Under the pieces are notes generated by a model that was not told where the DNA came from, ran no database searches, and saw only the letters and a list, made by a program, of their open reading frames with translations. A stretch of 64,000 nt of DNA from Lepidodermella squamata (lineage: Eukaryota; Animalia; Gastrotricha), in assembly GCA_047495785.1 (NCBI GenBank), contig JBLDXI010000033.1, positions 1,736,001-1,800,000 on the forward strand. The letters are read 5' to 3'. Positions within the stretch are counted from its first letter, which is position 1. Each line of letters starts with the position of its first letter. Positions 15,286 to 49,176 of the stretch are shown here, in pieces. A program made the position numbers and the translations under genes.

Positions 15286-18200
15286 ATGGGATCGCCCATC
15301 AACGTCTCGAAGCAAATGGTACCAACAGGAGCACATTCGCAGCGAATTTCCGATCCTTTCAGAGAATTGATTTCTTACTATGTGAAAAGCGAGCTTGACG
15401 AAAACTCTATTGACATTCTGAGGAGATTTGGCGCTGATCCTTTAGATGCGAAACGTAAATAAACTGATTTTTAATCAATCTGAAGGTATTTGAAATGTTC
15501 CATTTCAGGAAATAGTCGGAGTGGATTACTGGACACGGATTATCGAACCGTTACATCCGGTAGTAGCATAGGGGATCTGGTTACAGTGAGCTCATCATGG
15601 CCGTTTCCCCGTGTCCTTACCGATCGGCTTGCTGCGTGTCAGGTCACTTGTAACACGGGCTATCTGCAAGACATCGGACGAGCTTGGCTTGCCGTCGATG
15701 GCTGGTTGGCGTTGTGGAAACCTAGCGATACCTCAGGAAATAGCTTGGTTACTCTTGATCGCGTTCAGCAGTGGGGTCGAAGCATATTATGCCTCGGGAT
15801 CGTTACCCCGAAACCAGGAGTTTTCAGGGATAATGTAATTTCTCACATTCTCTGCATCGGAACCACCGACGACGTTCATATTGTTGGCGTTGTGACTAAA
15901 AGCGCTTCATCGTCAGATTCAGCTGACGAAACCTGTCAGTTAACTGACGTTTTGATGAGTTGCTCTACTGATGGAGTTGCGATGCAAGATATCGCCTGTT
16001 CGTCTAACGGACGAATTTTCCTCGCAGGTGTTGATGGATTCGTGTACGAAGTTGAATACAACGCCGTTGATACGTGGTGGACACCGAAACTTCGTCTGGT
16101 TAACCTCACATCTTCGTGGTTCCCTCTTTCATCCGTCACTAATATTTTTGGCTTATCGAAAGTTGATCCTTTGAAGCAGCTGTGTATTGACTGTGAGCGA
16201 CGAATCTTATATTCGAGATCCGAGAATGACACAATTTCTGCTTATTCTCTGGGCCAAGAAGCCATGCAAGCGTTTTATCACATGGGATCTGTGCACGTTA
16301 ACGACGCTCGAAAAGCGGCCGATCGACTATTTGGCGAAGCAGTCGCCACTGTTTCTCTCTTTCAGCATATTGTTGACATTGCTCCAGTACCATTGTCCGA
16401 TTCTACTGCGATTTCGCTTGTCGCCATTACCGATGGTGGTGCTAGAATTTATTTCTCTGCTCCCACCCAAACATCGCCAGATTTTTACCTTCGCCACATC
16501 CGGCTTCCACCAGGCTATACGCCTTCAGTAACTAGTCGGCCATCTGGCGTGTATGCAGTGTCCACGCTGCCTGGGTTTTCACTGATGTTCACCGCGGTCC
16601 AAACGCGTGCCACTCCTGCATCGCCTGGTTTATTGGCTAGGCCATCATCTGTGGACCAAACGATCGCATGGGTATACGCTTCTGGAGCTAAATCAACCAT
16701 CTTGAACCCACCTGTTGGGATGAATGGCGAAATCACGCCATCAGCATCAGGCGAATTCGTCTCGCCCGCAGCCCTCTTTCTCGGCAGGGTCCTACACGTT
16801 TCGCTGCTTACTCGAGCAAAAGAAGCTGCATCGGTTCCGCTGTGGTAATATAGTTCAGCTTATATATTATAATTGTTTGATTTCTTTGCTTTTCGTAGTG
16901 TGCGACGAAACAAACTTTTGGCTATTACTGATGGGGTCATTCACGTTATAGAAACGGTCTCTCTAGTAGACCAATTTCGATGCTTGGTTTCTCTATCAGC
17001 CGCTGCACCTGTCGACCGCGGAACGACGTCTGGCCCTCGAGATATCAACCGATTGGTCGCCCTATTGGGGCCTGTTCGCGTCTGCGCCTTGGCTCTAGCG
17101 TCATTGACTTTCGATCCAAGTCGAATTCAATGTGACCCGCAGTTGGTTTTGGCTTGTTTGAATAAGTATGGCATTCAAACCATGCCATCGAACATGGCCA
17201 ATATTCGCCAACCAGCCACGCCACAGCAACCACATTGGATGCAACATAGCTTGATTGGCGGAGCTCAGTCATCGCCTCAGACGCCTGGGGGAGCTCAACC
17301 TACCATCCAGCCCCAGCACGCCTGGAAAGCCACAACTCCTCGATCTGACGCGATCGCTCTCTGCTCCGCGCTTCTGCTGTCGCCCATATGGCAGAGTTCG
17401 TTAATTGTTCGCAACCAAATTTCAGCTAAGCCTGACATGACAATGTCGCCTAGTAAGCAACTCCAAGTTTTGCAATCGGTTTTCGAAAGCAGACTGTCGC
17501 CTTCATACCTGAATTCAACCGCTCGGGCGTTGCGATCTGTCCTTGAAATTATTTCTCGCTTCGTTCCGGCGACGACTACCCAGCCTATGGTACGTGGCCA
17601 TCACCAAGCTATGTCGCCCTTGGTCGTCGAAACCGACGAATTGCGCCGTTGGATTCACATCACTGAGCGTCTTGTTCAGTTGATCAGTCTGCTCGGTATC
17701 ATCGCAGAACACGATATCGACGCACTGCTCACCCGTGGCTGCGAATCGAGCGAGGCCCAAGCTGTTTTCGCCTCGTTGACCCTCAACCAATGGCTCGCGT
17801 CGAGCTTGGAGGATGACAACACTGTTACAAGTGCGCTGATCGCCGCTTTATTCCGCCTCTACGACCTTGCTGGTAGTGATACCGGACCTCTTAGCACCAG
17901 GCTTGAAGCTGCCTGTCCAGCTCTGTACACCCGCCTGGAACGGGTCTATGCAAAAGCCTTGCGTTTGCTCGTCGCTGCGGATAAAGCTGCTATCGATCGG
18001 CGACCTGAATTGCTGCAACAAGCAGTCGGTTTATTACGAGAAGTTGCACCGCATCTGAATCTCGCCCCTGTTTGCCAACACCTTGTTCGTCTGGGTTGCC
18101 ACGTCGGAGTTCTGGACATCTGCCTCGAAGCAGCCAGGATTCTCGATCCGCATTCGATGGCTCTGATGCATCTGAGAAATGGCCGGCCCCTCAACGACAA

Positions 18201-20175
18201 CGCTGGCCGGGCGGCTTTGGACGTTCGCCATCAGTGCTACAACCCGATTGCTCAAATGTTGAACGTGTTATTGGTTGAAAGCGGGCAGCCGGGTGGAAGT
18301 CTTGATGTTGTTCTGAAAATGATCTGCCGCGTTACCGACGATGCTGTGTTCCACTTTTTCGTCTACGACTGGTTGCTGGATAAGAACATGTCCGATCGTC
18401 TGATTGGCGCCCACCAGCCGGACGCGCCGGTCATGCCGTTCGCCGACGAATACCTTCGAATGTGCTTGGCTCTCGCGACCAGCCTCGACGGTGGAATGAC
18501 TGGTTCTGAGATGGTGTCACCCCTCCCCGGTGGTTTGAACGCGGAATCGCTTTCGGAATTGCTTGTCAATGTCTACATTAAACAAGGCAGGCATGCAGAT
18601 GCGGCTGAATTGTTAGCCCGCCTCGCCGAGGACGACTCGTCATCGTCGTCCCTGAGCGACCGCATCGCCCGACTCAGCCGAGCTATTCTTTGCCTGCGGT
18701 CGATTTGCGGCATGGATGACCAGTCGGCTACGTCTCAGCTGTTCTTGGGCGAGTTATCTGACAAACTTGAAGCTGCTCATCACCAGGAAAAACTGGCTGA
18801 GCGAGTTGCTATGGCTGCTAGAGCACCGGATGCGTCTGGTATTTTGCGGAAACATGCCGATGTCGCGCTTTCTCAGCTAAATGCAAGGCTTCTCCCCATC
18901 CAACAGGTATTTTCTTGATGTGTATATCTAAAATTGTTGAAAAACTGACGGTTTATTGTTCATCCCAGATGTATGACATTGCATCGACGTCTGAACTTCG
19001 CATTCCAGACGCTTGTCTTCCGTTGCTTCGATTTGCCAATATTACAGACGTGGGTGTCATTAAGGAAGTTTGGAAAGCCGTCGTTGATACACGTAAGCCT
19101 TTGCTCTGTTGAATATTTCCTAACAATAACCAGAAATTCTAAATTTTTGTAATGCCTAACCATCCAAATTTTCCTTAGTGAAACCACCGAATCCCCCAAA
19201 AGGCTATTGGCTGAACTAAAAATTGTTGGAGCACGCGATTTGGTAAATTTTCCAGATTCTTTGCATGCTATTTCTTGAAAAAGGAAAAATTTCCGAAAAA
19301 CAAATTCTCGGCCTTCGCGAATCAAACCCAGAAATTCATGATTTTTTCAAGAAGTAATATGCCAAGATGCGGGAAATTTCACCAAATCGCGTGCTTCAAC
19401 ATTTTTTAGTTCAGCCAATAGCTATTTTAGGGACTCGGCGGTTTCTCCAGCTGCTAAGTTACATGCTTCGAATGGAAAAAGTTCAAAGAATCCAGGATAT
19501 ATTGCTAGTAGCCTGAGAATTTGCATAAAAAGTCATATTTATAATTATTCAGTTTTGGCTAAATACGGTCGCCTGTCTGGATCCGACCAGGCTAAGATGT
19601 CTATGGCTGAAGAATTCGCCGCGATTGCTAAACAGCACATCTCGTCCGACTTGTTCTTCCCGCTTGATTTCATCATGCTGCAACTCGAATTCGCCGCCGT
19701 TGAAATGTCGTTCGGCTCCGGTTGGGTGCCGCACATTTTCCTCGACCAGCTCAACATTTCGCCTGTGATTCTGTTGAATGTCTACCGCCACGCCGTTACG
19801 GATCGTATGCAATTCTGGGAATCGGTCGGCCAGCCGCTTCACCTGGTTGAATCCGCTCTAAGCGTCGTTCAAGCTGCTGTTAATTCGATGTCAAGTGGCA
19901 GGGGCATGTCTGCGACCGAGCGCGGTCGTGTTCGTGATATCTTGGAGCAGTTTCTCGACGAATGCCGCGTTGAAGTTCAGCAGTCGCTGACACTGGTTGG
20001 CCACGACGAAACGGGAAGCGCAGGGTCTTTGCTGTCGAGAGTCAACGAGTTGAAGGGAATGCTGAGGTCCGAGCCGTCTGTGATCGCGTCTCCCTCGCCC
20101 TACCACCCGGCCGCGATTTCATCGCCTTCGCTTCTAATGAGCGCATCCCGGACACCACGTTTTGGTGCTCGCTAG
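15286..20175 (+). CDS. NUP155: Nucleoporin Nup155/Nup170 family, multi-exon
   Basis: SGLLDTDY, IGRAWLAVDGWLALW, PKPGVF, NGRIFLAGVDGFVYEVEY, RILYSRS, LRHIRLPPG, FHFFVYDWLL, LSDRIARLSRAIL, FFPLDFIMLQLE. Exons join through GT-AG introns; the start codon is inferred. Confidence 0.9.
19180..19445. mobile_element. Fold-back/MITE-like inverted repeat in a NUP155 intron
   Basis: About 100-bp imperfect arms: ...GCTATTGGCTGAACTAAAAATTGTTGGAGCACGCGATTTGGT... versus ...ACCAAATCGCGTGCTTCAACATTTTTTAGTTCAGCCAATAGC... Confidence 0.7.
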
Positions 20176-23100
20176 TCAACTTAACGCATTGATTTGAATT
20201 CAATTTTTAGGAAAAATAAAATGTTAGGCGTTTTTTGTTGTCACCGCCTCGGGTTGCGCTCCAAGCGGAGTGATTACACGTGATCAATAAACCCTTTTTA
20301 CTTCTCTGTGAATATTCTCTCACTCGATCACTGTTGATGTCCGCTTGAATTCTACTTCCGGTTCAACCAAAATACACGCTCGTCGCTTTGATTTCTGAAA
20401 TAAAACTGCGAAATTATTGAAAAACGCTTTTTTTACTTATGCAATACCAATATTATTTTCCAGTAACTGAGGTGAGAAAATATCGGAGATGTTACGAAAA
20501 GCGTTGATCAGGGTCATGAGCTGGAATTTTCCAGTAGTACATATCCAACTAGTGTGTTACCCATAACCCATAGAATCACCTTGCCACCTATTTTTATGCA
20601 AGACGAGGTCCTGCCAGCGCTCGAATTACATCGACTATAATACAAGTTCAGTTATTGGGAGGTCATATTTCCAAGGACAAGTCAGGCTGGTCTCTTCGTT
20701 CGAAACACCGCCATAACAATCGGTCAACTTACAAGTAGGTACCTGAGCCTGAAATTGTGGCTCATTTTCACGAACATTCAGTAACACGTAATGGGCACAG
20801 CGAAAGCATGATAGCTTCAAACCTTGTATTTAGGCTTGGAAGTTCCGACTTTGTACAGATAAAACCAATACCATTATTATTTGGATTTGCCACCTATTAC
20901 TACGGTTGAAAAAGAATGATGACCTGCCATGATCGAAAGCTTCTCTATACATTATTAAGTGGTTAAATCTAAAACCTGTGACATTATGTACTGTGTAGCT
21001 TGCCAAGCCAAGGACAGTACAAAAATAGGTATCATTTACCTATCAGCAGAAGGCCAAAAATACTTCGATGTCCGCGTCTAATAGGAAACTGCAACCTGCA
21101 CTCGGATGGAACCTCGACGACTAGGAAATTCAAAACTGATACTGCGAAATCTATGCGACAGCAAGATTTCCGCAAACCTTTGTTAGCGGATTTATAACAT
21201 AAAATTTTCTTTATTATTTGATCCTTTTTCCTTCATTAAATAGTATAAAAGATTGTGTATGAAAATGACAGTAATTATAACAAATTAAGGAGAAAACTGA
21301 AAAATAAATTGGATGCTGTGTACCCAACTCAAATTAATTTACACCAAGCGCACCTAGTGTCATAGGAGGACCGGCATCAAGCGCATACCTTCGTACCTAT
21401 CCTTTTCGTCAACCTGGATTAACTATACCCAATATGAACTTCAAGAAATTTCAATTACGCCAAAATAGCTACGAATTTGGCCATGCAAAACATTTCTATC
21501 CTGGGCCACGTAATCAGCCTCCTAAAAATGTCTTATCCCTATTTTGTTCAATAATGTTACCTATTAACAACATCGATCCACCTCAGTTTTGGTCGCCCTT
21601 GAGGTATAGCTAGTTCACGTATCATCTATGGGCTGCAGTGATTTTTGGCACATTGCTTTTCGAACCTAGCTGTCCACAAGTCCCTGGCGAATTCAGCATT
21701 TATAATCTCCAGTACTCATCGTTATCTCCTCCAAGTTTTCAAAGCAGAGCGCATATATCGGGTATTTGTTTCTAGTTATGAAACCAGCTTCAAAGTAGCA
21801 ATATCAATATTGGCGGTTCCATCATTTTACGAAAGTTATCGAAGCAAACTCTCAGCTACTAAAGTTGATAACATTGATAATCTTTTGAATTTACCTTCAA
21901 ACCGCAGAAAAACTCAAGACACGATAAAAATGATAATGCTAGTTACGCAGTTTTATTTATCAAATATCGCCTGTCACCTGGAGAATACGTTTGCTTTGCT
22001 TTTTCTCTCGATTCAGTGTCACAACATCAGGCAAATAGCACATGAATGATGATGACGACCAGTGTATAATATAGATAGTTATAATATATAAATTCATTTT
22101 ACAGGCTTCAAGCTTTAAGAGTCAATCGCTGTGATTTACAATAGCACAAGCGATGCTTTTTTTGGCAAAGAAATGCATTCAGCCAGCCTTCTGTATCAGT
22201 TTTCGTTCCAGCTTTCTATCAATTCATTGAAGGTTTTGAAAATATTCGTACAAAACGAATTTAAACATGAATTTCAGGAAACACGCGCGACGATGAAGAG
22301 AAATATTAGTAGTAACTGATAATTGCAAAACAGGATTTTTCAACTTCCACAATGTAATGAAGAACTTGTCAAACTTGCCGAAGAAAACGAAAATAACAGC
22401 TTCCCGCAGTACAAAAGTAATAATGATCGATTTTATTTGCATCTGACAGTCATATTTCTACTACTAACCAATCAACGACGCGGCACCAAGTACCAGTGTT
22501 CTTAACAAATGACTCTGGGCATGGTAAGATAGGACGTTGTTTTAAAAAATAGAGTTCATACATGCCAAGAAGTTGATATCAACGGATCTGTAGTATAGAA
22601 AGAGTTCGAAAATCGGTTTCGCATTATAAAAACAAAATTTCCAAAATTGCTAGATTAATAATGATCTTACAATCGATGAATTATTGAAAAAGGAGCCGTA
22701 TTAGAGAATCGGGACAGTTTTTTTAATCGAAGATCACAGACGCCTTTGGATGGCTGGCAGCGCGAGTCGTGCTCGCCTTTCAAAAACTAGCCTAGAAAAG
22801 TTATCCATCAATTATTTACTCATCAATATTCATTAAAAAAATCCACCGGAGACAACAATTTAGGAAGAGCTTGGCTGTAAACAGCAGAAGTTTCAAATAA
22901 CAAAAAAAAATCCGACATAAATTTGTAAACACGTTGCTGTTACGTACCGCTAGAGTTTGGACTCAACTAGAACGTAAATGCTACCTCATCAAGTTTTGAT
23001 GGCACACTAACACTGAGTTTTCGAGTAGAACTCGGGAAGTTGAACTTCGGCGACATAGATGCAATATTTGTATTGTAGCTTAAGCACAACAAATGCGTTC

Positions 23101-23316
23101 AAGTGTTCGATAAATTCAAACGCCCATGTTTCCGATCAGAAATCAGAAGATTGAGAAAATAACGCCCATTTCTTGGATATTTTTCTGTACATCAATTTGA
23201 ATTAAATGAGGTGTTGAAGTTATATTGTTAGAAAATGTATTAACGATATCAGAGAAAGTAGTGACCAGAAAATTAGGAAAAAATGCGCCGCGTATTTAAA
23301 ATAACAGTTCGTGAAA

Positions 23317-24332
23317 TTATTCATCGCCATCGACGCTGAGCGACTCGTCCGAAGACATGCCGGCGTCTTCTTCTGACGGACTTTTGTCGAAGAAAACATC
23401 CGGCTGAGCAGGAGTCGACAAACCAGGCGTCAGTGAATTTTGGTCGGAGGAATGGCGCAGTCTGCCGTTACCGGAAATGCGGCCTGATTGCGACGAAGAG
23501 TCGCGTAGCAGACGATAGAAATCTTCTATCTCTTGCTCTGAGATGTTCACTTGGCTGTCCTCATCGCCAGCTTCCTGCCAGCCCATCGACAGCAAAAGAG
23601 CACGTTCGGCGTCAGAGTCAACAAAACTGCTATAGTGGCAAGGCTTAGCATTCATAGTGAATTCATTTTGTATATCGAAATTGCAAGTTTTGTCAGATTT
23701 TGGCAAAGCATTGGATTCATCATTCGCAGTAAGAGGTAGCTAGTAAAATGATCTAAATTAACAGGTCATAATTTAGTGAAGCAGTTAATTACCTGAGCGC
23801 CGTTGTGCTGAAGACGCGTTTTAGCCAAATCGCGGTCGACGTACGACGGGCAGAATACGTCATCGATCATATCATATTCACGGCGCACACTAGCAACACG
23901 GGGACGGGTCGCCTGAGTCTCGTTGACTTGTCTTTCAGAAACATTTCGCATCCTGAGACCGCGCATTTGAGAATGGCGGAAAGGATTATGACCTAAAGAA
24001 TCATTAAAAACGCCTGAAAATACCACTTAGTCCAAGAAATAAAGATTTAATCGAGATTACTTGATTTGAAGTCGCTATTGGCACCATAATAGTGGGACAA
24101 TGAGAGCGGAGTCTGGTGAGTTGGCTCGTGGTAGTAATTGGGATGATGTATATGCGTAGCATTGTAACCTGGAAACGAAGACTTGAAGGCTCTATCCTTG
24201 AATGGGCTGAAAACCTGCGCGTCACAAATAATTGAAAATTACAACAGCCATCGATTTCATTAATTTATAATTTACCGATCCGTGATGCCAACTACCTCTC
24301 GGCTCAAAATCATCGCCACTCGCGTAAGGCAT
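23317..24332 (-). CDS. Vasculin/GPBP1-like protein, multi-exon
   Basis: C-terminal exon DSDAERALLLSMGWQEAGDEDSQVNISEQEIEDF plus an acidic tail resembles the vasculin motif (EAEHRLLKEMGWQE...LTEDEMREF). First exon MPYASGDDFEPRGSW ends at a GT donor. Confidence 0.6.
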
Positions 24333-25244
24333 CGTACAAAATGTAAACAAAGCGAGATAGCAAGATGAGGTACCAAAACACCGATTCAATCGAACGATTG
24401 TTGTACGAAAGTACAAAGTGAATTCAACTAGTGCTACACCATCAGTTGAAGCGAGATAATAACATTTAATCACTAAAATTACAAAAAATGCAAAGATGTA
24501 CCAATACCTAAGATGAATACCTAAGATTATCACCGCAAAAATGTCATAATTTTATATGCAGAGAGCCCAAGTAAGTTGTAAGTACATTTCATCAGTTATC
24601 ATCTAAAAATGCTTAAAATATGGTATACAGCTCATACTTCTCCATTGCCCATGAGGTGAAAAGCTGCAGATACCTTGACAGGGGGCAGCGAACACCTCGC
24701 CACTGGCTGGCGCCGCAACTACCTGTTCCAAGGGTGAATCTGAACACTGAACCCTGAACAGTGGACGATTCGATGTAGATGCACGATCCGAATCCGAAAG
24801 ATATCTCCGTCTACGATAGATCCCCTTCCCCGTTCTCCGCTTTATCCCACTATGCCCCTAATAAAGTATATTCATATTACATAATTTTATATGTTAATCG
24901 ATTATTTATAGAATATTGATTTATATTGGATCTGAACAATTTTTTAACATAAATTTAAGAAGGATGAATGATTTTGTCCTGTAATTGTTCTGTTTTCGGC
25001 GATTTCCCGGTCAACTTTTCGATTTGCAGATGTTTCCAGGATCGAAGTCGCGTGTCTAAGTCTCGAAATTTCGCGCGCTGTTGGATTTTTTTAAAAGCAT
25101 TTCATCACTTCAAACATAAACTCATTTTCGTGTCAAATGGAAGATGATTACACGCAGGGGAGATCGCATTTTACTACTTGCGATGCGAAATGTTTAACGC
25201 TGACGTGTTATTGTCTGGAATAATCAATTATGAATCATCTTCGG

Positions 25245-25257
25245 TTCTGGAACCTTC
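25245..25257. promoter_or_regulatory. Heat-shock element upstream of VCP
   Basis: TTCtgGAAccTTC is three alternating nGAAn units, ~140 nt upstream of the VCP ATG. Confidence 0.4.
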
Positions 25258-25398
25258 TTGGGTTACCACATGTCTATTTAACATCTAGGATATGGCATTT
25301 GCTGTTAATAACTTCCCTGAAGTCATTTGTATGTTGGTTTCAGCGGATATACTTGTTATTTTGTTTTAGGAATTTTAACCCTATATAAATAAGTAAAC

Positions 25399-27947
<2,549 letters not shown>

Positions 27948-30095: not shown

Positions 30096-31549
30096 TAATA
30101 AGCCTAAAGGCGGAACACGTCAATCATCACAAAACGTTTGCATGATTTCTATGTTTTCAGATGGGTATAATTATAGGCCGATCTACTTGCAGAATTGCGT
30201 GATAATTATTTTTCGAGAAAGAAGAAGTTGCTTCTGCCCAGAGCTCCAACAACCCGGTAATATCGTATCAGCATTCCTGGCCGACAGAACCGTCCAAGTT
30301 CGGGTCGGCGAGCTCTGGGTCAAACCAAACTGCGTATTGTCGAAGAGACAGGATATCTTGGCGTAACTTCTCAGGATATGCGGCGATTTGGTGAAATGGT
30401 GCAAACGGCAAAAAGGCGGTGCCCTTTACAGTGTCAGCTGCCGTAGTTCGCTACTGAGCTCGTAAAATCTACGGCGCCGAGCTGTATTTGTGAGCATCAA
30501 GGAATTCCAGGACTTCGCAAAAAAGTGTCTTGATCCCACGTCTCTCGCAGCCGACAAAGCATGACACAAAGTCGTGTCCGTCAACTTTTGTCCGCTTAAT
30601 TACTTAAGAAAGTCTATCCTCCTTCCGCCTACTACACACTCAGTCCGTCCGAAAGACGCAACAGACGAGGTTCCCAAACAAAACAAACAACCCAAATCTG
30701 ACGATACCCCGACGATACGTCGCCGGCCATCTTGTAACCCTCTAGCAAAAAAAATAAATATATTTTCAAATAATAATGCTGTCGCAAAAATATTGCCAGA
30801 CTTTTACTATTAAATAAATTACGAAATTATCGTTTTTATTAACTTGTCAAAACTACAGTGCGCACAAAAAGTCAGGTCCCATCCTGTTTTCCGCTGCAGC
30901 GAGAGCTACCGCTCAGAAATTAAAATAAATTAAAAAATTGAGAGAAAATATGAATTCCGTTGCGAAATTTGAAAAATAAATGCACAGAAAAACATGACGC
31001 TAAAACCCTCAATCCAGGTTGAGCGGGGAAAGTTGTGAAGTAAGGGATTCTTTGTTTTGGATTATCTCGAAATCTAGGACGGTTGCACCCCAGGATTTCT
31101 CGAATCTACCAGTCGTCAGGTTTCGAAGAATCCGATTTAATAACAGAATACACATGTTACCGTCTTCAATTCTGATATACATACCCTTGAAATAGAGCAC
31201 TTTCTGCAAAAAAACGACATTTTCCACTGGATTTGAACATAATTTTTACTTTCCCTCAGATCCAAGCACGGTAACCACATAGTTTTTTTAGCATGCCTTA
31301 AAGGTTGAAACTCCGCGAGTATTTTTGGTTCATAAAACCCTTGTGTTACCGTTTTCAAAATTTAGGTTCTTAAAGAATTGAATAACGCCTGCAACATCCC
31401 AGCCAAATTGATAAATTAAATTTGAGCCCAATTCAAAAGTTGAAACGGTAACATGTCCTTTTTATTTGCGTGCTTTAAAGAATCGAGATATGAGATTAGT
31501 TTTTCGTAAAGAAATCCATAAGGTTCCGTGTTCTTTTTCTAGATTCACC

Positions 31550-32197
31550 ATGTCTTCGCCCAGCTCTGCCAGTTCTGATCTTCAGGACGAAATTAACTGC
31601 AAAGTCTACGATATTTGCCGGAAACCCGCGCCTTCCTCAATCTTTTCGACACCATATATTTTTTACTTCTTCTCCGACTTCTTCTCGTTTTCTCTGACAT
31701 CGTCCTTGATCATTTTAATGTTCTGCGTCCTCAAGATCACGTCTTTCGCCCTGTATGGTAAATTTTTCAGTCTCATCTTTTGCATCATTCGACTTGTTTT
31801 AATCCTGGCTTTGTTGCTTTATTTTAGTGGATTTTCTTTTCTTCTTGGATTTTTGTTTCTTGCCATTGATTTTCATCCGTTTTTTCTTCATATTTTTACT
31901 CAGTCAAAGCATTATTGCGCTCTGCTGATGAAATTTCCTCCTTCTACGGATAAACCTATCTCGCTTGCCGAATTTGATCGCCTTTCAATAGATTACACGA
32001 ATTCGGAGTTGCAAAAGCTGAGAAATTACGTCATGAGTCCCCAATGCAATCAATGGAACCTCGTTCTGCGCCTTCGCAATGCAACACAGTTCGCATATGC
32101 TATCGATAACAATGAGATGAGGGACTGCAACTTTATGCCCGAAGTCGGTGATGAGAAATCTGAGGCTGACAGCATTAGCTCACTTGATTCGGATTGA
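31550..32197 (+). CDS. Transposon passenger: truncated NEMP/TMEM194-like nuclear-envelope membrane protein (~215 aa)
   Basis: Several hydrophobic segments followed by FPPSTDKPISLAEFDRLSIDYTNSELQKLRNYVMSPQCNQWNLVLRLRNATQFA and an acidic tail, resembling the NEMP1 C-terminal region (LLTEEEY...[34 protein letters not shown]). Confidence 0.75.
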   Translation: MSSPSSASSDLQDEINCKVYDICRKPAPSSIFSTPYIFYFFSDFFSFSLTSSLIILMFCVLKITSFALYGKFFSLIFCIIRLVLILALLLYFSGFSFLLGFLFLAIDFHPFFLHIFTQSKHYCALLMKFPPSTDKPISLAEFDRLSIDYTNSELQKLRNYVMSPQCNQWNLVLRLRNATQFAYAIDNNEMRDCNFMPEVGDEKSEADSISSLDSD

Positions 32198-32379
32198 GAA
32201 CTTATGCCGTAATTTCTCTACTCACAACTCCGAACTAGTCTAATCTATTGCGAGACTTTCAATTAGGCATTTAACTTTGTTCTCTTCATCTCCATTTTTC
32301 ATGTCCCTAATCTGTAATTGTGTAACTACGAAAATGAAATTTTTACTAATTTTCAGTCTTTTGTTTTATAGATATTATT

Positions 32380-33507
32380 ATGTTCACAACTGAGGAGAGA
32401 ATATTTGCTTTCAATAATACCAAAGTTCCCTACCGACAGTTTTGTGAAGCTTGGCGAAATCGGTTTGAAAGTAACCCCCCGAACAGAAAATACCGCCTAC
32501 GTCTTGTCAAGAAATTTAATCAGTCAGGATCGATCCATAACTTGCCGCGATCAGGTAGACCGCGCTCTGCTAGAACGGACGAAAATATTTATCACACTGC
32601 GATTGCGTTATGTGAAGACATTGCTGACCCCGAAGTTAATATTTCAGTTACGAGGCCGCGTGTCGAGGATATTGCGGACCATCTTATGATTTCCAAACAA
32701 AGCGTGCGCAATATCATACGTTTCAACTTGAAATGGCGATGCAAAACTGCATGCAGAGTCCATCAGCTGAATCAACAAGACATTTATCGCCGAGCAAACT
32801 TTTGTAGTGCAGCTCGAAGAATGCTGGAGATAGATCCGAACTTCCTGGATATGATAGTGTGGACCGATGAAGCACTGTTCACGCTCAATGGAACAGTGCG
32901 TACTAGTTACTTGCGCTATTGGGGCGACCCGGCTGATCGAAGGAAATATTACTCAAAGCGCCGTGAGCACAGTGGCGTCATGGTATCCATTGGTTTGTGG
33001 AGATATGGCATTCTGGGTCCATTCTTCTTTGATGACTTGCCACGGCTTGAGCCAAACCGACCCAAGGATAGGATCAACGCGGAAAAATATTGTCAGCTTC
33101 TTAAAGAGCGCTATTTTCCTGAAATTAATAGGCAATTTCCAATGACCGACAGCGAGTTGCGATCTGATGTTTGGTTCCAACTCGACGGCGCGCCCATTCA
33201 CACCGCCACTCAAACAAAGTATCTGCTTAACTTGCATTTTCCGGAGCGCTGGATAGGAAACAAAGGGCCTATGAATTTTCCTCCTTACTCGCCCGATTTA
33301 ACGCCACTGGATAATAGTTATTGGGGCGTTCTTCGTACGCGGGTTTATCGCCGTCGGCCATCTACTCTTCCTCATCTCAAATGGCTCATTGAAGAGGAGT
33401 GTAAAGCCATGTCACTGGACTATATTGAAAAAATTTGCACAGTGGAAATGAAAAGACGAATCAAACTTGTGTGTCAAGAAAACGGAAACTTCATCGAACA
33501 CATTTGA
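32380..33507 (+). CDS. DD41D transposase (375 aa, uninterrupted)
   Basis: N-terminal HTH and RSGRPRS linker; catalytic WTDE, QLDGAPIH and YSPDLTPLD with 41 residues between the second and third Asp. Confidence 0.95.
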   Translation: MFTTEERIFAFNNTKVPYRQFCEAWRNRFESNPPNRKYRLRLVKKFNQSGSIHNLPRSGRPRSARTDENIYHTAIALCEDIADPEVNISVTRPRVEDIADHLMISKQSVRNIIRFNLKWRCKTACRVHQLNQQDIYRRANFCSAARRMLEIDPNFLDMIVWTDEALFTLNGTVRTSYLRYWGDPADRRKYYSKRREHSGVMVSIGLWRYGILGPFFFDDLPRLEPNRPKDRINAEKYCQLLKERYFPEINRQFPMTDSELRSDVWFQLDGAPIHTATQTKYLLNLHFPERWIGNKGPMNFPPYSPDLTPLDNSYWGVLRTRVYRRRPSTLPHLKWLIEEECKAMSLDYIEKICTVEMKRRIKLVCQENGNFIEHI

Positions 33508-33733
33508 CAGTTTATTTTCGTTGACGATAATTTATTTGAATTTTTGTATTTGTATGTTGAGTTACTAGTCAAATATTGTTTTACTGTCTTCCTAGTCAAC
33601 ATGCATGCAATATTAAAATTAAAATAAAATGACTTGTAGCACCAGACTTTTACTATTGAGGCACGAAATTATAGGCAAGATTGTAATGCAACGAATATAT
33701 TTTAGTCAGTGCAGTGATCATGCAGATGAAACC

Positions 33734-34687
33734 TTATCTGCGTCTTCTTGGGACAGTGAAGCGTCCAGTGCCGTCTCTGCTTACTTCTTCCACGAGCTGA
33801 GTAGGCAGCCAGCTCTTAGCACGCTCATACATCCTCTTTCCGAGGCCAATTATGATATACCAGACATCAGATTTCGTAAAGACGAAAATCCATCTAATGA
33901 TAATGCAGATGGTGGATTCTTCCAGCATCAAGCTCTAAAAATATCGAAGTCAGGTTTATTGAGAAAGTCTGTCTTGGGTACTTACGAGAGCCAAACCGAC
34001 AGTCGTGTAATATGTCGCGGCAATTATGAACTCCCCGATGGCACAAAATAATATTTGTAGCAGCAATTCCTCGCAGCCAAGCTTGAGAAATGATTTGCAC
34101 ATCATCCATAGCGCAATTATAATGAGGTAAAAAATCAATTGGCCTTTTTTGAACGATTCTTGCTGATGAGGTAGCATTAGAATTTGGGAGATAGCTACTC
34201 TCCAAAGAGGATATTCCAGAATGAATTCGTTAAACTTTGTCCTGACTTCCAAAAAGCCGGCGAAAAAGTCATTGACCGTGTCTATCGCAATCGATTTGGC
34301 ATCAAATTTAACACCGGCGCAATAGCCCGGAATTTCAGGATAATACGCTGCGTAGACGTCCAGATCTTTCTCATCATAACTTGCATAGCAAGTCTTCCAG
34401 TTCTCGGCTGCGCTGCAATTTTGCGTCTTCCTTCCTTCTCGCTCAGCTTCGCAAACAACAAGCTCGAATGCTAAGCGGCGATAATCAGGAGTCTCATCAC
34501 TTTTGCATTTCGCGTCAGCATTAGAAATCCATTCTTTGAAACATTTTTGCTTTCTCGTTAGGAGCATTTCTTTGAATTTTCTTCCAGAAATGATTCGCAA
34601 TTGGTCAACTTCAAGAGAACTCGTTTTATCGGCAGGGATAACGCCCTGAACTAACATCGGCAGCCAGATTGCAATAAGACGGATCAT
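33734..34687 (-). CDS. Transposon passenger: Brambleberry/GEX1/Kar5-like nuclear membrane fusion protein (2 exons, ~300 aa)
   Basis: Signal peptide; six-Cys domain C-x11-C...RLAFELVVCEAEREGRKTQNC-x8-C-x22-C; C-terminal TM segments. A 51-nt GTAAGT...TTTTAG intron (33935-33985) joins ORF 33734-33931 in frame. Confidence 0.85.
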
Positions 34688-34835
34688 TCCAGCAACTTGC
34701 AAGTAAAATTAATATAATAATTCCTACATCAAAGATACAATCTAGAATCAAAGAAAGTTATTAAGTAAAATTTGAGCTAAAATCTGAATAGAAAAATTAC
34801 ATATGTTGCAAAATGAGCATAGTAAACATGTAATT

Positions 34836-35268
34836 TTAGTCTAGTTTCACCCCCGCACGATCAAAAGTCACTTGCTCGTTGTTAGCAACAAACTCAATTG
34901 CACCTCCTCTGCCCTCCTCGACAGCTACAGGACGGACTCGCCTTTTCAGCGTCTTCTTAATTAGTAATGTGAACAGGATGATTATGACTAAAAACATCAC
35001 CGCCGCCACAGCCGCAAGGCCGACTATTGCTCTATGTACAAAAGAAGATATGACTCTATTATTGTTGACGAAAACAAATATCATACTCCTTGTGGTCAAA
35101 TAATTGCACCGGGGTACTGGCTGACGGATGGCTTTGGGCCTCTGGTTCAGGTTCTTCCGACGTTCCAGCGCTGTGTAGGGATGTGGCTGTGGCTGTAACT
35201 GTGGTAGGTTGCAAGGTCGGTTGGGTTGAGCAGATCGCCCACAAAAGGCAAAGGGGAGATTCATCCAT
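34836..35268 (-). CDS. Transposon passenger: small mucin-like single-pass membrane protein (2 exons, 125 aa)
   Basis: Ser/Thr/Pro-rich N-terminal part, 55-nt GTATGA...CATAG intron (35032-35086), TM AIVGLAAVAAVMFLVIIILFTLLI followed by KKTLKRR. Confidence 0.7.
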
Positions 35269-35855
35269 GATTTTCTATAAAATTCTATTTAGAATGAGGG
35301 TAAGACGATGAGAAGATCTTGTGAGCAAATGTGCAGGAGATTACAGCGTCGAGACTACGGAAATAGCAACTGACGACTGCGGGCGAGTGCGAGAAAGGCT
35401 GAGCAACTGACCTACTATGTACTTCTAAACCGCCTTTGTTTCCCGTTTCCCCCCGTTTCCCCTGGCAACAGACGTCCGTTATTTTAATTTTAATTCATAA
35501 AAATTATTAATTATCAATTTTGACAACATATTTCTAATTATTTTCAAATTTTACCCGCGAATTTCCGGGTGAGCGGGGTGGGACCTGACTTTTTGTGCGC
35601 ACTGTATATTGAAAACACGCGCGCGACTTGGATTTCGAGGAGAAGTTTGGTAGCGAATGAAACGCTTTTTGCCCTGGATCCTTGTTGTGTTGTGCCTAAA
35701 TAACGCTATTACTGCCGTTTATCATAATCAAATTCAGGGTTTGTTACCTTTCTCTCTGGTTATCAACTCATTTCAGTGTTTCACGCGACCAGCCGTTGTG
35801 GTTTTAGAGGTTTTACTGTTTGTTGAGTTTTACAAGTGACTGCTGGAAAATCGAA

Positions 35856-37532: not shown

Positions 37533-40500
37533 ATGACTGACAAAAAAGCTGCGGCGGTACCAGAAAATGAAGGTTCCTTCAAGGATCTCGCCAAAGCCAT
37601 CTTAGACCGAATCGTTTCTGATCCCAACTCCGAGGAATATACATTTCCATCATGCCTCACCGCGAAGCAGCGGGCCTATATCCACCGGCTTTGCCACTCG
37701 GCGTACAGCGGACAAGTGGCGACCCGCAGTTCGGGGAAAGGAAACAACAGAAGCCTTCATGTTTGGCTGAAAAAGAGCTCCACGGCCATGGCTAACGTTA
37801 GCTCTAGCTATTTCGACGTCAGCATTTCGCCAGCCAGCCTTCAGCACATGCAGGTTATTCTAACGAGGTCGCCGCTAACAGCGAAAGAACGAGCCGAATG
37901 CTCAACTGCCCTTGACAAATTTATTGCCGCCGAAATGCCGAGTGATTTCACGCGATCGGCTTCAGGCCAGCTTTCGACCGGTTTAGCCCAGGTTCCACCT
38001 CAATTACCGACTCAGTTAACGGTCGAGCGTCAAATGGGCATGACGCTACCCATCCAGCGTTACCGTGAGCAAATCTTAGATGCCGTTGACAGGAATCAAG
38101 TTGTGATTATTACGGGCGAGCCTGGTTGTGGTAAAACTACCCAAGTTCCTCAAATGATTTTGGACCGATGCAGCGAAAAGGGTCTGCCTTGCCGTATTGT
38201 TTGCACCCAGCCACGCCGAGTCGCGGCAGTTTCGGTAGCCGCTCGAGTTTCGACAGAGCGTAATGAGAAAATCGGCAATTCGATTGGTTACCAAATCCGA
38301 TTGGAAAGCCGAGTGTCACCGAAAACCGTTCTTACATTTTGCACCACCGGTGTGTTCCTGCGTACGATCATGTCTGGTGTCGATACTGTCGGGAAAACAG
38401 TTACTCACATTTTCATCGACGAAGTCCATGAGCGGGATAGATATTGCGACTTCCTCTTGATCGCAATCCGAGATATTTTATCCCGTTACCCAAAGTTGCG
38501 AGTGATCTTGATGTCAGCTACCATTCAGGCCGATCTGTTTTCAAGTTATTTCAATAACTGTCCGATTATTACTGTGCCTGGCAGGTCGTTCGAGGTTACC
38601 GAGTTTTATTTGGAAGATATTCTGGAGAAAACCAGTCATTTAGCGATGCTGAGATCGAGCAGTTCAGTTAATACCCAAATGATGGCAATGCTTTACGGCT
38701 TCGATGGTCCGGTCGATGAGTCGAACCAAATTGTTTCTCACATTCAGCATCAAGCCACCTCAGCTGATGCGGCTGATATGGATCGTTTGCTATATGCCGC
38801 TTTTACGAATACTCTCGACGATCCGTCAATTAAATCGATGATGGAATTGATTTTGGATCAGCGCGTCGATGTCAACTATCGGCATTCGGAAACGGGTATA
38901 ACCGCCTTAATGGTTGCGGCTCAACGCGGTCAATTGGAGCTGGTGAAGAATCTAGTTAATGATTTGGGCGCCGATTGTTCTCTTACCGCTAATTACGGCT
39001 GGACCGCTGTAGATATGGCTCAACATTTCGGTCAAGTTGCTGTCGCTCAGTTTTTGAAAGACCGTCTCAAGCTTGCTGAGAAGAGCGTGACTTCGAAGAC
39101 TGAGCCACCTCCCGAGCACAATTTAGTCGCTGAATATCATCGATTGTTTGAGGGTTACAACCTCACGAAACCGAAATCCATGGATCATCGTTTGGTTTTC
39201 ACGGTGATCAAATTGGTCCATCAAACAGCTGCCATTGAGGGGGCAATTTTGGTTTTTGTTCCCGGTTACGAAGATATCACCATTTTGCGTCAAATGCTGC
39301 TGAATGATCAGGATTTAATTCGAGGCAATACTCGGATTCAGCTGTTCACCCTGCATTCGCAAATGCAGTCTTCTGAGCAATTCCGCGTTTTCCGAAGACC
39401 CCCACCGAATATGAGAAAAGTCGTCCTATCAACTAACATCGCTGAAACCGGCATTACGATCGACGACATCGTCTTCGTGATCGACACTGGTCTAGTCAAG
39501 GAGAAGTCGTTTGACGCGACTGTTGGAGCGCACGCTTTGGAACTGCGATGGCTGTCTCGGGCCAGTGCAAGCCAGCGGCGAGGCCGCGCTGGTCGTTGCC
39601 AATCCGGTGTCTGCTATCGCTTGTACTCCCGTCGGCAGTTTGCGATGATGCCAGAAAATGATACGGCCGAAATTCTGCGCACGCCTCTTCACGAACTATG
39701 TTTGCAGGTATGAGATTTTTTTTAATATTTAAGGAGGATTTGAATTAATATTTGTTTTTAGGCCAAACTTCTGGCTCCGGTGAGTGACGGCAGTATCATT
39801 GGGTTTCTGAGTCGGGCTCCTGATCCGGTACCTGCTGAACAGACAGCGGCAGCTGTGACGTTACTGAAGCAAATTGAGGCCTTGGATTGTTTTGAAGAGC
39901 TGACCGAATTCGGCCATCACATTGTTGACCTCGCGATTCCACCTCAACTTGCGAAAATGGTTCTCTACTCGATTGTGCTGAAGTGCCTCGACCCGGTGCT
40001 TACCATCGCCTGCATCCTGGCCTACAAAGATCCGTTCATTTTGCCGCCGGGAGTTGAACAACGCCAGGCGCAGGCAATGTCTCGTCGCCGTTTTGAGGCC
40101 GGTGTCTTCTCGGACCACATGGCGCAGTTGAGATCGTTCCAAGCGTGGCAGGATGCGAAAGTCGATGGTTGGGAGGGAAATTTCTGCGAGCAGAACTTCC
40201 TGTCTCAATCGACGATGGACATGGTTGTTGGCATGCGGTCTCAGTTGCTTGGTCAGCTACGAGCCAGCGGTTTCGTCCGTGCCCGTGGCGTCTCCGATAT
40301 TCGTGATTTGAACTCAAATTCTGATAATTGGGCTGTGGTCAAAGCAGCTCTAGCCGCTGGCCTCTACCCTAACCTCGCCTATATCGATAAGGCGAAACGG
40401 CGGATTTCGACCGAAAAGCATCGACGTTGCCGGTTTCATGTCGGCTCAGTCTTCCGTCCAGGTCCTGGTATGACAGAGGGCACGAACATCGAGTCGATCC

Positions 40501-41847
40501 CGACGCAATTTTTGATTTACGACGAGCTGAGTCAAGCCGCTGGACTCACTCAAATTCGGGGTTGTACCGCCATCACAACAGCGACTGTTCTCTTGATCTG
40601 CGGACCAGCCCGCTTAGCCGATCTGGGTGCCGAAATTCCCGACGTTGCTTGCAGTGACGCTGACTCTGAGGACCAAAGTGTTCCTGCCCAGCAACCCCCG
40701 GCTATCAAAATCCCACCCGGTGCTATTGGCGACGAGCCTCCCGAGACGCCGTCTTCGGCCCCGCCTCACGATCACCGTTTCAGGATCGACAACTTCTTGA
40801 AGTTCAAGATTTCACCGCAAGCCGGGTCACTCGTTCGTCAGATGCGAGCTAAATTCCAAGCGCTAGTATTGCGCCGAATTCGAAGCCCGGGCAAGCAAAT
40901 GTCGTCGGCCGATGATGCCTTACTTCAAAAAGTCGTGCAAATCTTGTCCGCCGATGAGCAGCTTCTTGGTATTCCACCTCCGTCTGGTATCGGAAAACGA
41001 CCTCGTCCGATTGCCAACGAGGCTGTTCTGTCGACTGGAAATGACGATCCATCGGCCGAGCTGAGTAATATCACTTTTGAAGACCCGATTGACCAAATGC
41101 AGGCTCAACACTTGGCGCTGAGCTCCGTCTCTGCCGGTGGCGGATTGCACCACGGCTCCCCAAAGACCATGGTTTTGACCACTTCCCATTCAGCAACGAA
41201 TTTCAACTCGAGCCCTAAGCAGTCGGCTACTGGAGGTTCGAATACAGTAATGAAGGTATTCAGCCCGCCTCGTGTCGGTGCAAGTCGCGGCATGTTTGTT
41301 TTCGTTGTCTCTTGCCTGCGCAAATTGAGCGATTTTCACGAAGTTCGCCGCTCTGAAACGTGGAATGCCAGCGGACCTGACCAGGCCGCCAGATTTTCGA
41401 AAATTCTCGCTCAATCTGGAACAATCTACGTTCTTTTCGCTGTTGATTCTGCTGGAGGATTCAACGGGTCTGTTTTTCGATAAATTTTTGAGAACATTTT
41501 TAAGGTGGATTTTTTTCAGTTATGCTCGTTTGATGGCTCACATGTCTGGAACCTACTCGTTCAGGCTTCAGTGGATTCGAACGTGTTTGCTGCCTCAACA
41601 GCTCATCGCAGCCCGCTTGTCAGGCCCTCAGCTATTGTTTCTGAGGAATGGCGAAGCTCAGGCAGCTGCGGGTGATGGCGAGTCCTACGAATTGCCGCCC
41701 ACTGTTGGTCACACTTTGTTGCGCCTTTGGAGTCAACAGGTGGCGACAAATGCGGCTGGCAATGCTTCTCTGAATACGGCTGCGATTGACACGACCGAGT
41801 TGCTGCGATTGGTTAGTCAGCAAGCTGATTTCACCAACCAATTTTGA
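37533..41847 (+). CDS. YTHDC2: 3'-5' RNA helicase YTHDC2 (R3H, DEAH helicase with ankyrin insertion, HA2/OB, divergent YTH), 3 exons
   Basis: R3H QRAYIHRLC; GEPGCGKTTQ, DEVH, SAT, QRRGRAGR; ankyrin HSETGITALMVAA; SQLLGQLRASGFVRARG; YTH-like C-terminus. Confidence 0.93.
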
Positions 41848-46197: not shown

Positions 46198-46612
46198 ATG
46201 AAAGCCACATCCAAAGAGAAGATGAGCACTAATGCGCAATGCTAAAGAACTTTGCTTGAGAAAAATTGTGATACCATTCGATGTGATAATCTTGTGTTAT
46301 TCGCAGCTTTCCTCGAGACAGTAAAACAAGAGATGTTGCGTAAACGAGGTTTCGTATTTAAGGTTTCATCCAAGGTTTCCTGTGACTTAGCGGAGAGTTC
46401 AGTTTCAGTTGAAGATGATGGGTACCAAATCAGCAGGGTGAAAGTTCGCCTCCACGCCATGCAACACTTTTTGCACCAAGCTTAAATAATTTCTCCTTAA
46501 AATAAATATTCAAGTAGTCCTAATGGAATAACTTCACCCAAGTCCAGAAGGGGGTTGTCAACTTTTTCCAGAAATAATTTAAGATCATACTTCTTGGGAT
46601 CAATACTATTAC

Positions 46613-46680
46613 TATAGTATATAATATAATACTATATAATATATAATATAATATAATATAATATAATACTATATAATACA
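46613..46680. repeat. (TATAA)n microsatellite
   Basis: Imperfect tandem ATATA/ATACT pentamers. Confidence 0.85.
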
Positions 46681-46897
46681 ATACTTTATTAAGTTTTGCC
46701 CCAACGTCAGCCTCATCTGACGACAAACCCAAACCGCGATGATGAGGCGTGGTGACTGGCCCTGAGCGCGAACTTGGCCGCACGAGTCTAGCGAACCTCA
46801 CCGGTAGCTGGTCTCGAGGCGGCCGTTGATGAACGTTCCGGCCTGGTGGCTTTTAATTAGCCCCACTTCCGGAGGGGTCAGTCGCTTTCAGAGCGGA
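46675..46897 (+). ncRNA. U3 snoRNA-like RNA (divergent 5' domain)
   Basis: Box C' GATGATGA (46738-46745), box B GAGCGCGAA (46764-46772), box C TGATGA (46827-46832), box D-like CAGA (46889-46892), terminal CCGC/GCGG stem and the three internal stems of the U3 3' domain; ATACTTT near the 5' end. Confidence 0.7.
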
Positions 46898-48576: not shown

Positions 48577-48648
48577 GCGTCAGTGGTGTAACGGTCAGCA
48601 TGGTTGCCTTCCAAGCAGCCGATCCGGGTTCGACTCCCGGCTGACGCA
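48577..48648 (+). tRNA. tRNA-Gly(TCC)
   Basis: Cloverleaf GCGTCAG/CTGACGC, anticodon loop CTTCCAA, GGTTCGACTCC, followed by a T-run terminator. Confidence 0.95.
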
Positions 48649-49094
48649 CATTTTTTGCATTTTTCTAATAATTTTTCATTTCATAAATTTTCTGAAATAA
48701 TAAGATTAATTCAGCGATACCTCATTTGAAGGCAACTGAAGGCGCGACAAATTTTCCGTGTTCAAAGTGTAGTATCTGTTCTTTATAATAATAATCTACA
48801 ACGCCCTCTATGTGGGGGCTTCAATATTAGCCTGATTTTTGGCTCCAAGGGCAGGCGTTTCCAGCCTGCTGGTCCCGCCCACGAGTCGGCCCGGTATTGC
48901 AGTGCTTCAGGCATTTGGCTCACCCTTTCAATGGGGCAAAAGCAATACAAAAACAAATCTCTTCTAATTTTACACTTCTCATTTAAGCGGAGGATGGTTG
49001 TTGAGTTCAGTAGCGGAGAATATAAAACTGTCAACGCGCCGCACTGTGAGGGATTTACTACATATTGCATCTATTGTCATCACAAAATATGAAA

Positions 49095-49176
49095 GCTGCT
49101 ATGCCCGAGTGGTTAAGGGGTCTGACTTGAAATCAGATGCGGTCTCCGCGCGTAGGTTCAAATCCTACTGGCAGCG
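49095..49176 (+). tRNA. tRNA-Ser(TGA)
   Basis: 82 nt, anticodon arm TCTGA-CTTGAAA-TCAGA, long variable arm, GGTTCAAATCC, discriminator G, T-run downstream. Confidence 0.95.

Follow-up and report, generated by a model that had tools for sequence, protein, structure and literature searches.

Within a 64-kb stretch of the genome of the gastrotrich Lepidodermella squamata (contig JBLDXI010000033.1, positions 1,736,001–1,800,000 of the forward strand; hereafter the window, with positions counted from its first base), we identified a transposon of 4749 bp (30856–35604) that encodes a Tc1/mariner transposase and carries three further genes as cargo. One resembles the NEMP/TMEM194 family of nuclear-envelope proteins, another the Brambleberry/Kar5/GEX1 family of nuclear membrane fusion proteins, and the third encodes a small mucin-like membrane protein. 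The evidence supports a structurally intact Tc1/mariner element of the DD41D type. Probably, this is an autonomous DD41D element from a clade of which we found no description, whose accessory genes for membrane proteins of the endoplasmic reticulum (ER) and nuclear envelope would raise its own transmission.

The element is delimited by terminal inverted repeats (TIRs) at 30856–30884 (plus strand) and 35576–35604 (minus strand). Their outermost 26 nt, the core CAGTGCGCACAAAAAGTCAGGTCCCA, match perfectly at 30856–30881(+) and 35579–35604(−); even with up to three mismatches allowed, the core matches nowhere else in the window, shuffled sequences predicting none. Both repeats are flanked by TA dinucleotides (30854–30855 and 35605–35606), the target-site duplication expected for Tc1/mariner, so that the junction TA/CAGTG is read at both ends. 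With TA included, the inverted-repeat arms (30854–30884 and 35576–35606) are 31 nt long and 97% identical, with one mismatch (30/31). TIRs flanked by a duplicated TA are the arrangement by which a Tc1/mariner element is recognized. An earlier sequence-only reading had described perfect 26-bp TIRs with TA flanks, an uninterrupted DD41D transposase, a 4.75-kb element with NEMP-like(+), transposase(+), Brambleberry-like(−), and mucin-like(−) genes, and an insertion between RMND5 and LTV1. The unique pair of TIR cores, the gene order and orientations, the flanking genes, and an open reading frame (ORF) of 375 codons with the corresponding aspartate spacing all agree with that description.

The transposase (32380–33507, plus strand; 375 amino acids) has N-terminal helix-turn-helix domains and aligns with the Mos1 and Sleeping Beauty transposases from PDB. 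Its residues D163, D269, and D311 are aligned with D156, D249, and D284 of Mos1; hence the catalytic triad is intact. Among Pfam families, DDE_3 scores 23.7 bits, under the cut-off of 28.6, and the helix-turn-helix matches at the N-terminus are weak. Since 41 residues separate the second and third catalytic aspartates, a spacing also seen in most of the related transposases, we assign the element to the DD41D (Visitor/rosa-type) branch; this assignment is made from the spacing, the tree described below having been built with unnamed database relatives rather than with reference Visitor/rosa sequences. On these grounds the element is apparently an intact and autonomous cut-and-paste transposon. 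Its closest relatives that lack cargo are ordinary DD40–42D transposases, mainly from arthropods.

The closest transposase relatives (45–62% identity) are all located on ENA metagenome contigs of approximately 1.5–6.6 kb, and cargo genes adjoin the transposase in all seven clade contigs for which DNA was read and a transposase is present. The contig carrying the closest transposase (P0001; 4694 bp) has the layout of the window, as given by its gene table: an NEMP-like gene, a transposase, a 234-amino-acid minus-strand gene, and a further small gene. On contig L007, an NEMP-like gene lies directly upstream of a transposase that is 61% identical to that of the window, and on L008 a small membrane gene and a Brambleberry-like gene with 42% identity are followed by a convergent transposase gene (59% identical). 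In a more distant group (L001–L005), a local iterative profile search detected, in each of the five contigs, a Brambleberry-like gene at a distance of about 1 kb from the transposase; its strand is minus in L001 and plus in L002–L005, and its cysteines are conserved. In L001–L004, a small Ser/Thr-rich gene for a single-pass membrane protein lies beyond it.

In a maximum-likelihood tree, nine cargo-linked transposases and two of uncertain context form one clade with support 100/99. Its sister pair includes contig L013, which contains no Brambleberry-like ORF. No Brambleberry- or NEMP-like ORFs were found at any of 80 JGI outgroup loci of the DD41D type (≤36% identity) or in the remainder of the window outside the element. 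A search of JGI metagenomes yielded no relatives of the Brambleberry-like gene, and only outgroup transposases, again at ≤36% identity, which served as the negative controls; viral contigs yielded neither a Brambleberry-like relative nor a TIR copy. Within the clade, the Brambleberry-like gene is present in both main branches and the NEMP-like gene in the subclade closest to and including the window.

The ends are conserved as well. The pattern TA/CAGTG..AAAAG..GTCC is common to the TIR of the window, to the paired ends of the elements on L003 (4.87 kb) and L002 (~5.3 kb), and to the left end on L004. The divergent lineages L001, L002, and L005 co-occur in one metagenome sample, ERZ27333047, and near-identical variants are found on different contigs. 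Other ENA samples of the related elements are ERZ1426850, ERZ27332993, and ERZ23486764/787; a look-up of sample accessions in the literature gave no result. In L002–L005, the codon for the third catalytic aspartate of the transposase is interrupted by a common phase-1 intron (..TPL G/GT..AG/AT FS.WG), at positions 1370–1412 of L003, 1335–1385 of L004, 1450–1510 of L002, and 980–1120 of L005. Because the intron splits this codon, protein calls based on ORFs wrongly give G for D.

Several other features were observed on related contigs. On L013 (183–2213), an Arf/Ras-family small GTPase gene lies 280 bp downstream of P0011, a transposase of the sister clade with 36% identity; the contig yielded no TIRs, and the GTPase gene may be either cargo or host flank. 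On L009 (67–2680), a Brambleberry-like gene, with identities of 56% and 39% in its two aligned segments, adjoins a gene for a 397-amino-acid protein with a weak match to the hAT dimerization domain rather than the mariner transposase, an arrangement that may reflect nested insertion, rearrangement of a copy, or chimeric assembly. MULE-type transposase genes adjoin the elements on L001 (3274–4245) and L005 (2786–4090), indicating that these contigs come from transposon-rich sequence.

The Brambleberry-like gene is encoded on the minus strand by two exons and yields a protein of 300 amino acids. Exon 1 (33986–34687) encodes a signal peptide, a six-cysteine domain, and the first membrane helices; it is followed by a phase-0 intron of 51 nt (33935–33985, GTAAGT..TTTTAG) and by exon 2 (33734–33934), which encodes the last membrane helices and a basic tail and has homologous second exons in L008, L009, and L001. 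The intron interrupts the same codon boundary, after G(L/I)AL, in the window and in these three contigs. A 140-amino-acid plus-strand ORF at 33629–34051 was rejected as a fifth gene of the element, as it is antisense to exon 2 and has no family match.

The family of Kar5, GEX1, and Brambleberry is to our knowledge the only conserved one tied to nuclear membrane fusion. Its members are defined by a signal peptide, a domain with six invariant cysteines, two or three membrane helices at the C-terminus, and one or two coiled coils between this domain and the helices (PMC4291462). In the element-borne protein, the hydrophobic N-terminus MIRLIAIWLPMLVQG is predicted from hydropathy to be a signal peptide, six cysteines occupy positions C49, C61, C79, C91, C100, and C123, and hydrophobic segments near the C-terminus (approximately 183–201, 208–230, and 234–252) correspond to the membrane helices. 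Across ten element proteins, four of the cysteines are invariant in all, and the other two are invariant wherever the region is covered.

An exhaustive phmmer search with this protein against 1.84 billion representative proteins gave seven matches: five short ENA metagenome proteins, which are element-borne relatives, a 553-amino-acid protein of Nematostella with the UniRef name 'Protein brambleberry', and an unnamed JGI protein of 400 amino acids and similar build. When the profile of ten element proteins was compared by hhalign with the cysteine-rich domains of the Nematostella and JGI proteins, the match had a probability of 96.6% (E ~6e-10), and all six cysteines were aligned with those of Nematostella Brambleberry, including the NCS motif. 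The Brambleberry-like assignment proposed from the sequence is therefore borne out by both searches. In an AlphaFold model of exon 1, the cysteine-rich domain is an all-helical bundle (predicted local distance difference test, pLDDT, 85–94), and the region of the coiled coil is represented by a helix of about 30 residues at 136–167, modeled with low confidence; a Foldseek search of this model against PDB gave nothing at E < 0.5.

NEMP is an inner-membrane protein linked to fertility; vertebrate NEMP1 has roughly 440 amino acids. The NEMP-like gene of the element, which we call mini-NEMP (31550–32197, plus strand), encodes 215 amino acids, with three hydrophobic helices followed by about 100 soluble residues that contain the conserved C-terminal motif DKPIS..FDRLS.DYT..EL..LR..V.SP.CNQ. 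The protein scores 35.8 bits with the Pfam family NEMP (PF10225, DUF2215), for which the curated cut-off is 28.7. The L007 orthologue, 34% identical by tblastn and 38% in a MAFFT alignment, scores 28.8 bits; because the soluble motif by itself gives this score, hydrophobicity does not account for the match. The cut-off is thus passed in two independent orthologues, as the proposed family assignment had implied. Residues conserved between the window and L007 are mostly situated in the C-terminal motif, and a pre-computed Pfam NEMP annotation exists on the P0001 contig. A word-indexed homologue search with the NEMP-like protein returned no match, and a sequence search of PDB returned only noise.

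The match spans profile positions 129–239 of 249 (129–242 if L007 is counted), and the gene therefore represents a shortened version of the family. A complete NEMP protein has a signal peptide, five membrane helices, a region A, and a C-terminal region B (PMC4422613). Mini-NEMP has three helices instead of five; no signal peptide is present, and profile positions 1–128 are absent.

Selection on these genes was assessed from the proportions of nonsynonymous (pN) and synonymous (pS) differences, rather than from a ratio of rates (dN/dS), because synonymous sites are saturated between lineages (pS 0.85–0.91). Values of pN range from 0.25–0.28 in the transposase through 0.31–0.33 in the Brambleberry-like gene to 0.41 in the NEMP-like gene, and constraint is weaker on the small membrane gene. 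Judged by this comparison, the transposase, NEMP-like, and Brambleberry-like genes are under purifying selection, and the conservation of the cargo shows that it is functional and belongs to the element. The sequence-only reading had argued that two unrelated nuclear-envelope genes are unlikely to have been captured at random. Non-random capture is strongly supported by the presence of the same genes beside transposases of 45–62% identity, by the retained intron, by pN well below pS, and by the absence of these genes from the outgroup. As for two unrelated captures, both genes are indeed present, but the picture proved too simple, since the Brambleberry-like gene belongs to both branches and the NEMP-like gene to one subclade.

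The third cargo gene is also split by an intron. Exon 1 (35087–35268, minus strand) encodes a hydrophobic N-terminus and a stretch with 46% Ser/Thr/Pro; a 55-nt intron (35032–35086, GTATGA..ACATAG) is predicted from the splice sites and the joined frame; and exon 2 (34836–35031) encodes a membrane helix, a basic stop-transfer sequence, and a tail of 45 residues. The resulting protein of 125 amino acids has one strong membrane helix and no Pfam family match with E up to 10. Its orthologue on L008 shares the sequence MD(E/D)SPLCLL..IC, and in the subclade of the window, at least, the module includes the mucin-like gene.

The coding part of the element is framed by two subterminal non-coding regions, both of which are presumed to contain an inward-reading promoter. 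The left one (30885–31549, plus strand; 665 bp) has no ORF in frame translations; the right one (35269–35575, minus strand; 307 bp) is presumed a promoter region from its position. The motif TGTTACCGTYTTCAA occurs in the left region twice in direct orientation (31155–31169 and 31344–31358) and once inverted (31442–31456). It could be a promoter or a transposase-binding repeat; compared with shuffled sequences, its count is not significant when two mismatches are allowed. The spacer between the convergent genes (33508–33733, 226 bp) contains AATAAA on the plus strand at 33623 and on the minus strand at 33511 and 33531, and this signal is absent from the tandem gaps 32198–32379 (182 bp, plus strand) and 34688–34835 (148 bp, minus strand). 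Because AATAAA is situated only in the central spacer, on both strands, the element would be organized as two convergent two-gene units, mini-NEMP followed by the transposase and the mucin-like gene followed by the Brambleberry-like gene, each presumably driven from its own subterminal region and both ending in the shared spacer. Pyrimidine-rich AG motifs resembling splice acceptors precede most start codons by 6–10 nt in the window and in its relatives; together with the placement of AATAAA, they hint at two-gene transcripts, introns in the 5' untranslated region, or trans-splicing.

If the element works as we propose, the transposase would move the entire 4.75-kb unit between TA sites, as is known for the family. 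The accessory proteins would be inserted into the membrane system of the ER and nuclear envelope, with the six-cysteine domain facing the lumen and the C-terminal motif of mini-NEMP facing the nucleoplasm. There, they may act on nuclear-envelope dynamics, such as the tethering and fusion of membranes, in those cells in which transposition is profitable (germline or early embryo), and this action would raise the transmission of the element itself; candidate steps are nuclear re-capture of excised DNA, timing, and transmission bias. A role of the cargo at the nuclear envelope is inferred from the sole relatives that could be identified for two of its three proteins. We suggest tentatively, as a possibility that falls short of being probable, that the clade keeps its own Kar5/Brambleberry fusion protein and its own NEMP tether and uses them for transmission in germline or early-embryonic nuclei. 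Possible routes for such envelope machinery include the return of excised, envelope-wrapped element DNA to the nucleus and the biasing of pronuclear or karyomere fusion.

Eukaryotic elements with acquired fusogens are known, e.g., Mavericks in nematodes and retroelements with env genes, and the cargo might analogously be an envelope-like set that aids passage of the element from cell to cell (soma to germline) or between hosts. In such a set, a Kar5-like fusion protein would turn its lumenal domain outward on vesicles and be accompanied by a type I protein of mucin-like character and a multi-pass protein. All three cargo proteins indeed have membrane segments and the topology of the secretory pathway, and the clade is present in several metagenomes. 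We nevertheless consider such a transfer module unlikely: the element contains no gene for a capsid, packaging, or replication, the viral contigs yielded nothing, and the relatives of both identifiable proteins function at the nuclear envelope rather than at the cell surface.

Toxin–antidote pairs on mobile elements occur in nematodes, and drive of this kind, or by segregation, an idea of the sequence-only reading, is likewise conceivable here. The short NEMP protein would poison the oligomers of host NEMP or karyogamy, and another product of the element would rescue its carriers, so that offspring without the element would be at a disadvantage. NEMP1 oligomerizes through its membrane helices, binds RanGTP and BAF with its C-terminal region, and is harmful in Xenopus when over-expressed (PMC4422613); mini-NEMP retains membrane helices and is devoid of the N-terminal half. 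The distribution of the genes makes this explanation improbable, since with NEMP-like genes restricted to one subclade and Brambleberry-like genes found in both main branches, an NEMP toxin cannot have been the original function of the cargo.

A host-co-opted gene cluster, with TIRs persisting as relics incapable of supporting movement, could explain why a single copy was seen, placed neatly between two host genes, and selection on the cargo would fit a host-level function equally. It is poorly compatible with the perfect 26-nt TIR core, intact TA flanks, and intact catalytic triad, and with the paired homologous ends in three divergent lineages. Rather, these paired ends, the co-occurrence of several divergent lineages in ERZ27333047, and the near-identical variants on separate contigs fit a diversifying multicopy family, and we regard domestication as quite unlikely. 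Highly improbable, and largely refuted, is passenger capture, i.e., host gene fragments taken up once, as in Pack-MULEs or Helitrons, and decaying without function: both genes of the nuclear-envelope type are shorter than canonical family members and no close host donor was found in homologue and phmmer searches, but the ORFs have stayed open between lineages whose synonymous sites are saturated, pN is far below pS, the intron position is kept, and the cargo accompanies 7/7 clade contigs and 0/80 outgroup loci. Chance ORFs and a composite of two separate elements were rejected in view of the conserved linkage, the conserved intron, and selection.

Several observations weigh against the autonomous, cargo-bearing element that we favor. 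A cut-and-paste transposase acts inside the nucleus and hence has no obvious need for envelope proteins. The similarity to Brambleberry is approximately 25% identity and confined to the cysteine-rich domain; the canonical long coiled coil is not evident, with a linker of only about 55 residues in its place; and Pfam searches with ten family members, with E up to 10, left the Brambleberry-like protein unmatched, although Pfam likewise misses the named Brambleberry of Nematostella. For the NEMP-like protein, only the final 45% of the domain is matched. Comparison of the small membrane genes of the two subclades did not show them to be homologous. The element and its cargo are known here from sequence, with one copy seen, within the 64-kb window, and exact look-ups of the window's proteins in protein collections returned no record. 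The related contigs are metagenomic, so that their hosts are inferred only, and for P0001, whose transposase is the closest and is present on four contigs, the layout comes from a gene table without DNA. Finally, the related metagenomic host contigs have no synteny to the window downstream of CDC48, at either the DNA or the protein level.

The element is preceded by an RMND5-type gene (CTLH and RING domains, minus strand) and followed by LTV1; farther out are CDC48 upstream and an R3H-DEAH-ankyrin helicase downstream. The latter is formed by two consecutive large ORFs just downstream of LTV1 (37533–41483) with R3H, DEAD/DEAH, ankyrin, HA2, and OB domains, an architecture that we take to be YTHDC2-like. 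The region 15518–27848 shares Nup155–CDC48 synteny with the metagenomic contigs L010–L012, CDC48 being 96% identical in protein and 76% in DNA; the gap between the two genes is about 3.4 kb longer in the window and contains a Vasculin-like ORF (23317–23706, minus strand). CDC48 of the window is 84–85% identical to its best named matches, which include chelicerates, a myriapod, an annelid, and molluscs, and a close relative of it is present in the same ENA samples as the related elements. In the Nup155-type nucleoporin region, a 103-nt inverted repeat (19180–19445; 83% complementary, with a 60-nt loop) is the only long repeat of the window besides the TIRs. Small RNA genes form a cluster of U3 (46581–46897), tRNA-Gly (48577–48649), U2 (48741–48928), and tRNA-Ser (49095–49176), and tRNA-Leu is found at 58899–58975 on the minus strand.

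Tc1/mariner elements are the textbook minimal transposons, with two short repeats and one gene. The transposon type described here is known, while a conserved accessory module of the nuclear-envelope type was found described for no Tc1/mariner element: full-text literature searches that combined transposase with brambleberry or NEMP, or mariner with cargo genes, found no report of such an element, in agreement with what had been claimed when the element was first noticed. A clade that keeps two or three membrane-protein genes over deep divergence shows that even Tc1/mariner elements can evolve accessory functions, and the identity of the cargo suggests the nuclear envelope as a site of interaction between a DNA transposon and its host. 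The clade also offers compact, naturally minimized forms of both protein families that would be useful for functional study. If the proposed role is true, this would be the first transposon known to encode karyogamy-type functions.

Compared with known systems, the element has in common with DD41D/Visitor (rosa) transposons its short TIRs and TA flanks, as well as a single DDD transposase whose N-terminal part contains helix-turn-helix domains. Described DD41D elements are 1.0–2.3 kb long, with the transposase as sole gene (PMC8472432), whereas the window element has 4749 bp and three further genes, and the present clade spans 4.75–5.3 kb with two or three conserved accessory membrane-protein genes; carriage of these genes is the reason why its elements reach about 5 kb. 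One subclade differs further by the intron within the codon of the third aspartate. The Brambleberry-like protein resembles Brambleberry, Kar5, GEX1, and Tht1 in its signal peptide, lumenal six-cysteine domain, and C-terminal membrane helices, but has 300 amino acids against approximately 500–600 in those proteins and is encoded by a transposon rather than by a host gene. Similarly, mini-NEMP agrees with NEMP/TMEM194 in the last membrane helices and in the conserved nucleoplasmic motif that follows them, but at 215 amino acids it is devoid of the signal peptide and of the first part of the domain. Starships and ToxhAT of fungi, Mavericks of nematodes, which carry fusogen or toxin–antidote cargo, and Pack-MULEs are likewise DNA elements that move host-derived genes, and their cargo is sometimes under selection. 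They belong, however, to other superfamilies and are either far larger or carry decaying fragments, and none has been reported to encode nuclear-envelope proteins.

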